Assembly: GCF_033153115.1 (NCBI RefSeq)
Contig: NW_026889830.1
Coordinates: 2,294,001 to 2,358,000, forward strand
Direction: 5' to 3'
Origin: Saccostrea echinata
Taxonomy: Eukaryota
DNA: 64,000 nt
Shown here: piece after piece, positions 56,174-61,937 of the stretch
Layout of the letters: each line of letters starts with the position of its first letter
Position numbering within the stretch: position 1 is the stretch's first letter
Made by a program: the position numbers and the translations under genes
Notes under the pieces: generated by a model
The model's input: the letters and a program-made list of their open reading frames with translations, nothing else
Told to the model about the DNA's origin: nothing
Database searches by the model: none

Positions 56174-57710
56174 TAACAAAAAACAAAATGCTAATGACCA
56201 CTGAAGCAATTCTTTAAAGAATGCAGGTTTGAATGAAAAGTACTCGTCAAATTGAATTTCAAATTAAGTATTTTTAAAAATATTGTCATATACATGTACT
56301 ACATGTACCTTAATTTTGCAAAGGCACATCTTAGTACATCTTTCTACGAGAAAAACAGAATAATGATATCAAATTGTTTGAATGTTGTTCTTTATTCATC
56401 TCTAAACTTTGTGTTTTATTTTTTGGCTTCTATGTTAATTGTTGTTGTTTTTTTAATAGGTAGATAGGGTTTTGAATGATAGGTTGTCGCTAAACAGAGA
56501 AAAAATATGGAGATGACATATATATGTGTGTGATTAATAATTTTGTAATGTAATCAACAGTAAAACTTTTCTATAATAAAAATGAGAGATTTACCGGCCA
56601 ACTCTGCTTATAGTAGTAAGTACTTCTGATAATAATTATTCAACCCAGATAAGGGAATTTGTTATCTATGGTTAGCACTACATGATTGTTTGATTGTTTA
56701 TTGCTTATTGCAGATCGCTAATCTGCAGTATTTCGGCCACATTTCGGTGGTAAAGATTATTTCTTATGACCGGTTTTTGGAAGTTTTTGGGTTTCCAGTG
56801 AGCCTACTCTTTTTCGAAAACCTGAGAAATGATCTGTTGCATGCCAAGGGGGTTGAAACATTTCTTTAATAATTATTTTACAAGTTTAGGGACCCGTTTT
56901 TGCATTATCTAGTCCGTCATATTTTCTTCAGTATATTCAGTTTAACTGGAAGTTTTTATATTTTCCAATTCTGTATGATCAATATTCTGTTTCAAAATCA
57001 TAATTGTATTTATGAAAATTTAAAAAAAAAAATGCTGTTTGCTAATGATCACACTTTTTAATTATTCTCATGTTCAGTGACTGTCCAATTTTGAAGGATA
57101 CCAGACTGCTCACTAATATCGGACTGCCACAGGTAAAATTTTAGACTGCAAGAACAAAGGAACGGCATCACAGCAATGTTTTAAAAGTATGATCAAATTT
57201 TAAAACCGATACATGCTACTAACAAATAATTTTATGTTACAGTGGTTTCAACAGTCTCGTTAAATGTCAGTATTTTTGCAAATTCTAAATGGTAGTAATA
57301 ATGACCTCGTTTGCAAATACAACCTATCTTGGGTTGAATTGTGACTGACATGTTTTCCCGCCGAAAGTCAATATCTTGATTTTGTAATTTTCTACGCACC
57401 TATCAATTAACTTTTAAAAGTTTTCTCCTCATTATGGTTGACGGTGGATGGTCTCATTTGTTAGGATATTGTTTCCAAACTCAGTAATTTATGACTACGC
57501 ATCGGACTCGAGGCGCGTGTGACGACTACTGTATAAGGGATGCTTACTCCAGCTAGACGCTTGATCCCATCTCTGATATGTCCATCGGTCTGTGTTTGTT
57601 AATAGGGCATGATCTTGAGGGAAAGAGGGAGAGAAAAAAAAATAAGGGATATTTCTAGACCCCAAACCCCCGAAAAAAATGCTGATCATGTTTATTGTGT
57701 TTCTACTCTT

Positions 57711-58194
57711 TATTAGTCCCCTACCGGTGAAACCGGAGGGGACTATAGGTTTCCTCTGAGTCTGTCCGTCCGTCTGTCTGTCTGTCCGTCTGTCTGTCCG
57801 TCTGTCTGTCCGTCTGTCCCTCTGTCTGTCTGTCAGTCTGTCCCACTTGGTTTTCCGCACTTTTTCCCTAAACGCTTGCAGATATTGAGCTGATTTTTGG
57901 TATGTGAGTGTATCTTGATGAGTTACAGACCAAGTTTGCATTTCGTTCCGCTTCATTGATTTTTGACGGAATTACGGCCTTTTCAATTTTTACGGGTTTT
58001 CCGCAATTTTCTTCTAAACGCTTGTAGATATTGAGCTGATTTTTGGTATGTGGCTTTACCTTGATTAGTTATAGATCAAGTTTGCATGCATTTCGTCCCG
58101 CTTCATTAATTTTTGACGGAATTATGGCATTTTCAATTCTTAACGGGAACGGAACCAGATTACACTTGCCGGTAGGGAACTAGTATTGCTAATG
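57711..58194 (+). mobile_element. HINE-like element with (GTCT/GTCC)n and two ~146-bp units; 3' end cut by the assembly gap
   Basis: 5' hairpin TAGTCCCCTACCGGT-GAA-ACCGGAGGGGACTA; 3' subTIR CCGGTAGGGAACTA. Confidence 0.8.
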
Positions 58195-58335
58195 NNNNNN
58201 NNNNNNNNNNNNNNNNNNNNNNNNNNNNNNNNNNNNNNNNNNNNNNNNNNNNNNNNNNNNNNNNNNNNNNNNNNNNNNNNNNNNNNNNNNNNNNNNNNNN
58301 NNNNNNNNNNNNNNNNNNNNNNNNNNNNNNNNNNN
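58195..58335. other. Assembly gap (141 N)
   Basis: Read directly from the sequence. Confidence 1.
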
Positions 58336-58447
58336 ATTGAAGTGGTATTTAAGGTCAGACGACACGTTCCTCAATAATATATAATTTTCCCAAGAATAAG
58401 TATGTGTGCATTACTACGAGGCGCCGTTTTAGTATTTAATGCCATTT

Positions 58448-58822
58448 CGTGATATCACCTATACGAATAGGTGATACACATGTACCACTCTTTCATATTG
58501 AATAGGTGACATCACTTATTCGAATTAATTTTTGAGTTAGTGATATAACCTATTCGAAATAAATAGGGGATGTTACCTATTCGAAAAGACACTACCACCT
58601 ATTCGATTTGAATTAGTAATATCACCTATTTGAATAAGCAATCTGATTAAAAATCGGATCTTTGTTACGCTCCGAAATTCTGATGGTCGCTGTACAAATC
58701 CATCAGAGTTCGGAGCGTAACAAAGGTCTGATTTTAATCAGATAGTTGAATAAGTGATATCTCTTATTCGAATTGGTGAAATAACCTTTTCGTTTTGAAT
58801 TGGTGATATCACTTATTCGAAT
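58448..58822. repeat. Short-period array of GATATCACCTATTCGAA / TTCGAATAGGTGAT units
   Basis: About ten degenerate copies in alternating orientation. Confidence 0.75.
58639..58745. mobile_element. 107-bp palindromic mini-transposon with a perfect 9-bp TSD
   Basis: TTGAATAAG on both sides (58630-58638 and 58746-58754); ~47-bp arms around a 13-nt loop. Confidence 0.85.
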
Positions 58823-59489
58823 TTAAAAGGCTTTCTAAGAACAAGTTTATTTTCTTAGCACTGATTCAAAATCAAGATCTTGATTTCGTTACTTTTAAAC
58901 AAAGTTTTTAAAATAAAGATGATAAAAGATTCTCTGGAGTTGTTAAACTTAATAATGAGCCACATCCTCTACTATTTCTGATTAGAAAGCAGAAGGATAA
59001 CAATTATTTTTTATATACATGTATTACAAAGAAATGCAAAAAAACAGATATTCGAGGAATATATATCGTCTGATCTTAAATGGAAAAAGAGTATACTATG
59101 ATCTTTGTCTGTAGACTTCTCTAAATTTCGAGGGAAATTGTGTGTTGGGTGCGATGTCATCCCCTAGCTCTCCCATTTAAAACACACGAGAACTTATTTC
59201 TGAAACAATTCATTTTTTTTAAACAGAGACAATACATGCAAAAATAATTGTTAATTATTTATGTTTCTGGTTTAAAGTAATGCCGCTAGATATAGTTTAT
59301 TTAATATTTGAAAGGTATGACTTCACCAGACCCACCAAAATGGTACTCGTGCCCATTTTGGGGACAATCATTTGATTCTGAAAGGAGGGCTGACAGATTT
59401 CACAAATAAATAATCTGTCGTCAAAAATGTTGAGAATAAAGAATCTGTCTTCCTCTGATAAGAAAATAAATATTCTGTCCTGCGAGGAA

Positions 59490-60011
59490 ATGGAAATTGA
59501 AATATAAGATACCACAGAGTCTGACACATCTGTTTCATATTTGGATGTTTTACTTGAAAAAGAATATAATGGTTACCTAACAACAACGCTTCATGATAAA
59601 AGTGATGACTTCAATTTTACCATCGTCAACTTCCCTTACTTATGTAGCAAGATACCCTTATCACCTTCATATGGGGGTTTTGTCTCGCAGTTGATTCGAT
59701 ACGCAAGAACATGCTCTACGTATGAACAATTTCTAAAACGAGGCAAGTTATTGACAAACAATTTGATGAAACAAAGATATCAACAGTTTCGTTTGTGAAG
59801 TCATCATTTCGCAAGTTTAACGGTCGATACAATAACCTATCATTAAGTCAAATGCTGACAGATCCTTTTATACTAATTGTTAGGCCATTATTTACACACT
59901 GAATTGTCTACGGATTTTTCCGTTTTTCCAGATGATGACAAGGAGCACACGGCGGGTGTGACCGGTCGGCAGGGGATGCTCACTCCTTCGTGCCACCTGA
60001 TCCCACCTCTG
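59490..60011 (+). mobile_element. 3' fragment of the same Naiad-like Penelope family, including its 3' non-coding motif
   Basis: DTTESDTSVSYLDVLL...LHDKSDDFNFTIVNFPYLCSKIP...SQLIRYARTCS; visibly colinear with the reverse complement of 9290-9790. Confidence 0.85.
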
Positions 60012-60048
60012 AAGTCCATGTTGCTCTGCTCCCGATTTATATTGTTTA

Positions 60049-60261
60049 CAAAGGCAGATCCAGCGCCGGCGTTTTTATTATCCTAAAATCAAGGGGAAAC
60101 ACCTCTGATTTGTTAGAATTCGTCAGTTTCAGCGGGCTTCGCCCCCGGACTCCAACTAGGGCTTTGCCCTGGACCCGCTGGGGGCTTCAATGCAGCCCCC
60201 AGACCCCTTGCCTTCTACTGCAGCCCCTCCCCCCGTTATGAAATTCCTGGATCTGCCTCTG
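60049..60261. mobile_element. hAT-like MITE
   Basis: CAAAGGCAGATCCAG ... CTGGATCTGCCTCTG; GTTTA on both flanks (an 8-bp TSD is not evident). Confidence 0.65.
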
Positions 60262-61937
60262 GTTTAAATGTACTTTTAGCTTGTATACTGTTCGTTATCT
60301 CCATATTTCATTTTATCTCATTCCCCCCTTTTTTTAACAATAAGTTTGATCAAAACAAAATCTGCACAATCTATTTATTGCCAATGATTTGTCTGGCATT
60401 GGAACCGAGTGGCGGATCTAAAATTTACGAAAGCGTATTAGTGCCAAGTAATATGTGTTTTTGTTTTTTTAAGTTGGAATTTCCAACTTACAGTTGGCTT
60501 TTCCGACTTAAAGTTGACTTTTCAAACATTGAAGTTGGCTTTTCTAACTTAAAAGTTGATAATTCTAACTTCAATCTTGGTTTTTCCAACTTTAATCTTC
60601 TTTTTTTCCAACTTTTCCTCAGCGGGAGTGACCGATCGACAGGGGATGCTTACTCCTCCATGGCACCTGATCCCACCCCTACTTATACTTTATATGATAT
60701 AAATGGACTTTTAATAGTGATTCTGTTCGAATTATCTTAAATTCACATTTCATCAACAATATTTATATAAACACAGTTACCAATTTTCAGCTCACAACTT
60801 AATTGGAATATTAAGATCAGATGATACCCTAGTTAGATTAATCTAACTGTGTCTCGGGACAAGCCCTCACCACAGTTAGAATACGTCCCATATACTTGCA
60901 ATGTAGCAAATCGGAGTGGATCCACTCCAAAATGATTTTGAATTTAATACAAAAGGAAATTACCAAATTAATCATAACAAACCTTTTTGAGATGGTATAT
61001 GTGATAATGTCTTTTAACCTAAAAAATAATCCATATAAATACGAAAACTCAACTCATTTTCTTAACGTTTTTTCCTCGCTTCAAATTTAACGCCATGTTG
61101 ACATTCGGAACTGTCCGGATTGTTCATAGAAAATGCACAGAGTACGAGTTATCGCCCGTGTTTATTTTGCAACATTGCCAATACACGGAACGAATTCTAT
61201 CGTTAAACCGGGTCTGTAGGACAATATCATTTTAACGATAGAACGTTCTATCTAGTGATACCCAAAAGCCAGGGTTATTATCCTAGGTTCTCAGGCCTGT
61301 AGAAACGCGGGGGGGGGGGGCTTTTTCAGAAGTATAGTTTTTGCTATAATAAAGTTTTCTTTAGATGCTGCCCCCCCCCCCCCACTTATTGATGTTGTTA
61401 GGTTGAGCACAGACAAATTCCAGAATTTGGTCAATAGTTTAGTTTTTTCTTGTCAGATAATTTTTAGACCCCCCCCCCCACTTTTGGTCAGTGTATTTTT
61501 TTTCTTTTCTTTTTTTGCTTGTCAATTTTTTTTGTTGCCCCCCCCCCCCCACTTTTGAAACCTAGCTTGTATTTCGTTGTTTTTACATTCAAATTGAGTT
61601 GTTACATAGCATTATATAAGGAGTAAATTTGCATTTATGTAGAATTTCATGTTTTTCATGCTCAATATAGATATAAAGAAAATATTTTGGAGAATGCAAA
61701 ATAAGACTGGTTTGCTTAAAAAAAAATCGTGAGAAATATGTGCTTTAGCAATATTAAAATCTGTACTAACTGTTTTCTATCAAAAAAACTTATTCATATC
61801 ACATTTTTTTAGCATTCCATGTTCTTATCATCACTCTATATAATTATGTTTTCTTCCAAATAAGATGTACCGCACTGATCACCATACTTATTATTTGATC
61901 TCGCCGTATCTCGTTGTTATTATTGACTTTTAGCGGA

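Follow-up and report, generated by a model that had tools for sequence, protein, structure and literature searches.

A conserved 3′UTR block of oyster Naiad retroelements as a candidate recognition module for the element's own protein

The DNA analysed here is a 64,000-nucleotide stretch of the Saccostrea echinata assembly GCF_033153115.1 (contig NW_026889830.1, positions 2,294,001 to 2,358,000), which we refer to as the window. Three remnants of Naiad-type Penelope-like retroelements that share a short conserved block lie towards its far end, and are named below after the first position of the invariant core that each of them carries (57537, 59973 and 60643). The features of this region are as follows:

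57216..57341, plus strand: C-terminal reverse transcriptase (RT) remnant of the 57537 copy (tblastn)
57494..57622, plus strand: divergent-family block (covariance-model match, 76.9 bits; alignment A3)
59487..59883, plus strand: C-terminal RT remnant of a 5′-truncated, frameshifted main-family Naiad (translations match intact RT ends; tblastn)
59884..59939, plus strand: poorly conserved linker from the RT stop to the block (inter-family identity 0.45-0.77 per 10-nt bin)
59940..60029, plus strand: conserved 3′UTR block of the 59973 copy (covariance-model match 59933-60047, 92.7 bits)
60030..60049, plus strand: Naiad tail up to the insertion point (alignment with intact copies)
about 60050-60262: foreign insertion of ~210 bp that splits the Naiad tail (11-bp inverted ends, GGCAGATCCAG ... 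CTGGATCTGCC)
60260..60311, plus strand: remainder of the 59973 copy's Naiad tail (comparison with intact copies)
60618..60753, plus strand: 5′-truncated 'solo' copy, block and tail, ~136 nt (covariance-model match 60603-60724, 67.5 bits)

In the 59973 copy, the RT remnant stops at a TAG (59881-59883) and is followed by a linker whose length differs among families and whose inter-family identity is mostly 0.5-0.65. The block itself, which is also supported by the conservation profile, by pair counts and by the energies of cognate versus swapped helix arms, opens with the 5′ arm of an outer helix (AGGAGC-A-CACGG, 59941-59952); a conserved joining stretch (CGGGTGTGACCGGTCGGCAG) then leads into the invariant core (59973-60005), after which come the remnant of a downstream hairpin, mostly deleted in this copy, and the 3′ arm of the outer helix. 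The motif quoted in a first-pass annotation of the window is found at 59945-60011 and, as that annotation stated, sits just after the RT end, with its core starting 89 nt past the TAG (90 nt in intact copies). It had also been placed at the 3′ end of the element, and here the annotation needs correction: the element continues for ~105 nt more, to ...CTGTTCGTTATCTCCATATATTTCAT, and the 59973 copy ends in ...CTGTTCGTTATCTCCATATTTCAT at 60311. The insertion that interrupts this tail has the look of a small MITE, with a short duplicated GTTTA-like site on either side.

Recurrence of the motif within the window is borne out by pattern searches. The string GGGATGCTNACTCC-N11-TGATCCCA has three exact matches, at 57537, 59973 and 60643, all on the plus strand, and none in 100 dinucleotide shuffles of the window; a covariance model of the block returns the same three places (57494-57622, 59933-60047 and 60603-60724) and no others. 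The core reads GGGAUGCUNACUCC / UGAUCCCA. The copy at ~60621 does lack an RT, as noted at first reading, and proves to be a 5′-truncated copy (about 60618-60753) that adjoins an unrelated tandem repeat; its homology begins 25 nt 5′ of the core, other sequence takes the place of its hairpin region, and the copy ends in ...CACATTTCAT. The copy at ~57514, previously listed as a more decayed unit free of RT, belongs to a divergent family in which the core is intact and the flanks differ, with a 3-nt insertion, but an RT C-terminal remnant does exist upstream of it (57216-57341; 50% identity by tblastn to residues 61-101 of a 110-aa RT C-terminal query). A further main-family Naiad RT remnant is present on the minus strand at 9291-9708, and its homology ends at the 5′ edge of the conserved block (...GGAGCACACA|AATCG). 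The repeat at 60425-60615 is an array of ~20-nt units (AAGTTGGCTTTTCCAACTT), each of them internally palindromic, for which a genome search returned 112 matches on both strands and which is independent of the adjoining Naiad copy. A composite non-autonomous element made of this tandem repeat plus the tail (60400-60770) was considered and rejected, as the genome matches end before the tail, although masking of very common words might conceal a continuation.

Across the 923-Mb genome, the same pattern returns 9,245 + 9,283 matches at up to one mismatch, or ~18,500 copies, and the reversed pattern, used as a control, returns none. A genome search for divergent variants of the motif recovered point-mutated copies only, a search of viral contigs gave no match, and a search of prokaryotic genome contigs gave one chance-level match in a GC-rich bacterial gene. 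Of 83 RT-end fragments, 78 have the block downstream, and three of the five fragments without it were examined and are truncated, decayed or misjoined matches.

[quoted passage not shown] Copy L032 carries a GIY-YIG ORF (1062-1616; PF01541, E 1.7e-4, 22.2 bits against a cut-off of 22.6) and an RT ORF (2544-3737) in the same frame, with the stretch between them broken by frameshifts. Naiad/Chlamys Penelope-like elements are defined by this order of domains, with GIY-YIG at the N-terminus and RT at the C-terminus, and Naiads number in the tens of thousands in oysters (PMC8557442). In better-preserved copies, the RT ORF ends in ...SLSQMLTDVFHTNC followed by TAG, the motif lies 90 nt from this stop, and the shared element end is reached ~105 nt past the motif, beyond which the flanks differ (30 copies, aligned by eye). 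At least four families in the genome carry the motif. The main family has CCATGG in the spacer and is split into a younger and an older subfamily by a single base of the downstream hairpin; the second (~2,500 copies) has CCTAGG and the hairpin CCTCTGGAATTTCCAGGGG; the third is recognised by GGTGTTTCCAGGGGG; and the fourth is the 57537 type. A further family is found on ten metagenome contigs (OBLZ01..., OCZB01...), and these ten loci constitute the cross-species DNA used for comparison.

The proposal that the motif also spreads as a solo unit did not hold up, and short copies such as that at 60643 are instead accounted for by plain 5′ truncation of the retroelement, with no tRNA-like or other common head on the truncated copies. 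Naiad copies are 5′-truncated and often tandem or inverted (PMC8557442). In line with what is typical of such elements, two or three blocks occur together within 3 kb, either direct or inverted, at 12 of 95 loci. ARAGORN detected no tRNA-like head beside the copies examined. A separate SINE with a tRNA-Ser-like head (GGGACGTAAAACAAC...(CAAA)n body) does lie beside or inside Naiad tails at three unrelated loci (L059 1808-1898, L040 about 1380-1410 and L034 about 1610-1680); it may prefer Naiad-tail sites, or it may merely be abundant.

Comparison of the families indicates that the block is an island of conservation. Measured per column over all pairs of copies from different families, identity is 0.7-0.9 across the block (about -30 to +60), a value that in the core columns reflects ascertainment in part, given that copies and foreign loci alike were found via the motif or its encoded peptide. 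The corresponding values are 0.5-0.69 for the last 250 nt of the RT ORF and 0.4-0.68 for the tail outside the block, within which a small second peak of about 0.68 occurs at CTGTTCGTTATCT near the 3′ end. Two stretches of the block that were not used in the searches, CGGGTGTGAC and TCCGTGTTTG, show inter-family identities of 0.76-0.82 and 0.76-0.84, respectively. The contrast is also seen against the metagenome family, represented in this comparison by one contig, which aligns with the genome at 77% over ~280 nt of the RT core and at 89% over 57 nt of the block and has no match to the genome outside these two regions. Since the matches are so limited, we regard this family as foreign to the genome and the block as its best-conserved part. 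Base composition sets the block apart as well, its GC content being about 0.5-0.56 within an AT-rich element.

Inspection of the families side by side revealed a candidate outer helix, CACGG/CCGUG, that is continued past a small internal loop by distal arms whose sequence depends on the family: AGGAGC/GCUCCU in the main family, AGGGC/GCCCU in the second and third, and UGGC/GCCA in the foreign family. Three columns of this helix change on both sides. The cognate distal arms are the most stable combination in their own row (-7.0, -6.6 and -3.0 kcal/mol), as opposed to -1.6 to -4.5 kcal/mol when arms are swapped between distinct families and -6.2 kcal/mol for the closely related third subfamily. 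In alignment A3, 86% of cells pair, compared with 35-55% when the partners are slid, and 14 cells are changed on both sides against 7.0 in shuffles (1/500), although the structure tested was derived from the same sequences. When 117 copies were aligned to the covariance model, 84% of cells pair, both-side changes number 73 against 41.5 (0/500), and the score, 0.180, exceeds that of every slid version (0.104 at most), all of these being values from an alignment that was itself fitted to the structure. The covariation comes from three or four lineages, and one C-G to U-A double change in CACGG/CCGUG is expected by chance from CpG decay on both arms. Taken with these limits, the outer helix is moderately supported. 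The downstream hairpin is present in every family, with loops that differ and stems that partly differ, and is plausible.

The evidence on covariation divides in two: the outer helix shows some covariation, whereas in the hairpin the changes are one-sided only and RNAalifold awards no covariation bonus. The latter program, run on a MAFFT alignment of 23 representatives, gives a weak consensus of -6.7 kcal/mol, and on the gappy model-fitted alignment it predicts nothing. The helices originally proposed within the motif, CAGG/CCTG and GGGAT/ATCCC, are essentially invariant across copies; a candidate core stem, GGGAU/AUCCC, would surround a 22-nt loop that contains all of the family-variable positions. 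Folding energy is ordinary, with z-scores against shuffled sequence of -0.32, -1.70, -0.14, +0.34, -0.90 and -0.96 for the module in six copies and of -0.76 for the whole tail.

One function suggested for the motif was self-cleavage, by a new and perhaps protein-assisted ribozyme standing in for the hammerhead found in canonical Penelope-like elements. Several observations lend this idea some appeal: canonical hammerheads are absent from Naiads (PMC8557442), the long invariant core lies inside a helix-bounded domain, as in small ribozymes, and 15 of 97 sampled copies start within 40 nt upstream of the core. Some of these 15 are internal deletions, however, and the starts are scattered (at 2, 5, 7, 8 and 25-39 nt), with no 5′ truncation hot spot at a single nucleotide. 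The reported lack of a hammerhead is confirmed, CUGANGA...GAAA being absent from both strands of the tail. Rfam scans at E values up to 10, run on a 5.5-kb part of the window and on intact tails from two families, and thus on three different copies, returned no hammerhead, HDV-like, twister, twister-sister, pistol, hatchet, hairpin, VS or SECIS RNA; the only matches were chance-level, snoRNA-like ones (E 0.44-8.3, far below the gathering scores). To these points can be added the ordinary folding energy noted above. For RNA, three raw oligo-dT RNA-seq runs bearing the same species label, together with the contigs of one metatranscriptome run, were used, and reads were aligned to the last 800 nt of L032. 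Both orientations are equally covered and depth follows copy number, a pattern that fits passive co-transcription; depth peaks over the block because reads of all families align there. No pile-up of read beginnings or ends is seen at any discrete site in the three oligo-dT runs, which are libraries insensitive to cleavage, and this absence is weak evidence, since the Penelope-like hammerhead that has been studied is protein-dependent and likewise leaves no ends in RNA-seq (PMC11167929). On balance, we consider a ribozyme very unlikely. The same low standing applies to two bolder variants, namely a new class of catalytic RNA that cuts tandem Naiad transcripts to unit-length templates, and a dimerisation hairpin built on the CCWWGG palindrome, after the manner of retroviral dimer-initiation sites, which present palindromes in hairpins. 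A selenoprotein Naiad with a SECIS element was also considered and set aside: the scans gave no Rfam SECIS match, and the in-frame breaks are a mixture of TAA, TAG and TGA that arises from frameshifts and, in the copies examined, does not place TGA at cysteine positions.

A second possibility is that the block encodes a peptide (...TAGVTGRQGMLTPPWHLIPPL...), translated either from a small second ORF or as an RT extension when ribosomes read through the TAG. Members of the young main subfamily have no further stop in the RT frame for 77 codons beyond the TAG, up to the element end (L021 1411-1641; L028, minus strand), which by a rough estimate has a probability of roughly 1-3% by chance; the TAG has become a sense codon in L024 and L028 (TAT in L028), and several variable positions are synonymous in the RT frame (CTC/CTT, CCT/CCA, CTG/TTG). 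The 77-aa tail peptide moreover recurs in 236 clusters among 1.84 billion database representatives. The nature of these matches nevertheless tells against a protein. The best 150 of the 236 are all 46-256 aa long, and none of the 20 that were read joins an intact RT to the tail; two (P0080 and P0011) have an RT remnant upstream that is joined to the tail through a frameshift. Ten matches were traced to metagenome or run assemblies, and any name given to them is 'hypothetical protein'. A Pfam search with the peptide gave no family, between species the third codon positions show the same degree of conservation as the other two, and an in-frame TAG lies inside the hairpin of the older main subfamily, which is abundant. 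Nor is the frame itself kept: the stop-to-motif distance is 90 nt in the main family only and falls in all three frames in the second, and three subfamilies read the conserved GGTCCGTGTTT differently, as GGT-CCG-TGT, G-GTC-CGT-GTT or GG-TCC-GTG. The inconsistent frames, the in-frame TAG and the short-ORF matches together indicate that conservation acts at the nucleotide level. The database matches look like spurious ORF calls over element tails, and the block would account for short, spurious 'proteins' (...GVTGRQGMLTPP.HLIPPL...) that gene prediction on assemblies and metagenomes yields repeatedly. Judged from sequence, a coding role for the block is unlikely, and a read-through extension, if there is one, may be confined to the segment before the hairpin.

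What reading, then, best fits an abundant, sharply bounded, conserved RNA segment of this kind? With moderate confidence, we propose that the motif is the invariant core of a cis-acting 3′UTR module of ~90-115 nt that serves as a candidate recognition site for the Naiad RT/endonuclease. A cis role in RT recognition or template definition, one of the options raised in the first-pass annotation, is the best reading because the motif is more conserved than its surroundings and the outer helix shows some covariation; binding by the protein and the part played in template choice are the conjectural steps. In the RNA, the outer helix (NNGC-N-CACGG / CCGUG-U-rich-GCNN) would enclose the joining strand, the core and a short hairpin, and the core may form the GGGAU/AUCCC stem around its 22-nt loop. 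The Naiad RT/GIY-YIG protein would recognise this module in its own transcript, binding would select that RNA as template, and it would set the start of reverse transcription ~100 nt downstream, at the shared ...UUUCAU end. Were this so, it would explain both why the module is kept in every retrotransposed copy, however 5′-truncated, and why active lineages cannot alter it. Support for such a scheme comes from analogy, combined with the anatomy described here: a purified Penelope-like protein requires a specific segment of its own RNA, and its reverse transcription starts internally at a stem-loop, with the hammerhead dispensable for insertion in vitro (PMC11167929).

Conservation alone would be explained equally well if the block acted as DNA, whether as a promoter or set of transcription-factor sites that serve the downstream copy in tandem arrays or as a site where the element's dimeric endonuclease directs insertion into copies already present. 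The GC-rich character of the block within its AT-rich element would suit such a role, as would its palindromes: one is GACCGGTC, and another reads CCATGG in the main family and CCTAGG in the remaining ones, a two-base swap that preserves the palindrome. Head-to-tail and inverted neighbours are also frequent, and in Penelope the pseudo-LTR bears a promoter while the endonuclease recognises an element fragment (PMC8557442, PMC11167929). The compensatory changes of the outer helix, by contrast, point to pairing in RNA; full-length L032 has no second block in the ~1 kb upstream of its GIY-YIG ORF, and the RNA-seq data show no start-site pile-up, albeit in oligo-dT libraries that display starts poorly. 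We therefore regard a DNA-level element as unlikely. About as improbable is that the block has no function at all and that its similarity arises from recent amplification, from recombination between families or from the way in which copies were found. Most copies do belong to two large families, every sequence was ascertained via the motif or its peptide, and thermodynamic stability is unexceptional. Recency or tail swapping is nonetheless disfavoured because far more diverged sequence flanks the block on both sides, within the genome and against the foreign family alike, and the conservation of stretches outside the search pattern, along with the 89% versus 77% identity of block and RT core in the foreign family, speaks against a lack of function as well.

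A recognition module of the type we favour has counterparts in other retroelements. One parallel is with stringent-type non-LTR elements (R2, and the 3′ stem-loops of LINE/SINE pairs), which likewise carry a short conserved RNA near the 3′ end, retained in all 5′-truncated copies and more conserved than the ORF. These R2/LINE-type 3′UTR elements are presumed to be bound by the element's own RT for target-primed reverse transcription. Unlike them, the Naiad block belongs to a Penelope-like host with a telomerase-like RT and a GIY-YIG nuclease and lies ~100 nt inside the 3′ end, and its RT-binding role is that of a candidate; unlike in LINE/SINE pairs, no partner SINE sharing the Naiad block was seen. 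Within the same element superfamily, the Poseidon element PAc of Anolis requires for insertion in vitro an RNA segment located at the pseudo-LTR/ORF junction, inside the first 172 nt of the ORF and beside a hammerhead, with initiation at an AC-rich stem-loop (PMC11167929). By description, the Naiad block is set apart from this segment: it follows the ORF, lacks a hammerhead and is not AC-rich. The pseudo-LTR hammerheads of canonical Penelope-like elements resemble it as small conserved RNA motifs in a non-coding part of the repeat, but the Naiad block has no CUGANGA...GAAA, no Rfam match and no sign of cleavage. A structured 3′UTR element shortly after the stop codon is known from selenoprotein-encoding Naiads of clams and spiders, which have a SECIS just past the stop (PMC8557442); the oyster block differs from it in having no Rfam SECIS match and in the mixed TAA/TAG/TGA identity of the in-frame stops.

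Such a block goes unmentioned both in the paper describing Naiads (PMC8557442) and in a 2026 preprint about Penelope-like elements and retrozymes, and a literature text search for the block's sequence strings returned unrelated primers only. The block is necessarily contained within published Naiad consensus sequences, although no account of it as an element came to light. Naiads rank among the most abundant retroelements of bivalves and of several other invertebrate phyla. With its sharp boundaries, a length of ~100 nt and conservation above that of the RT core, the block offers a concrete candidate for a protein-recognised RNA in these elements, and makes template choice by Naiads testable with the in vitro system established for one Penelope-like element. 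The 33-nt pattern is also of practical use as a marker, tagging ~18,500 copies in this genome.

Two further repeat features lie between the 57537 and 59973 copies. The segment at 58631-58753 (within 58440-58830) forms a near-perfect hairpin of ~120 nt in an array of CCTATTCGAAT-type repeats; against Rfam it gave only a sub-threshold, plant microRNA-like score (41.9 bits versus a gathering score of 117), and it is probably a palindromic transposon remnant. At 57760-58190, two tandem units of ~150 bp (GGTTTTCCGCA...TTTTGACGGAATTA...) come after a (GTCT/GTCC)n microsatellite, and these repeats directly precede an assembly gap at 58196-58336.
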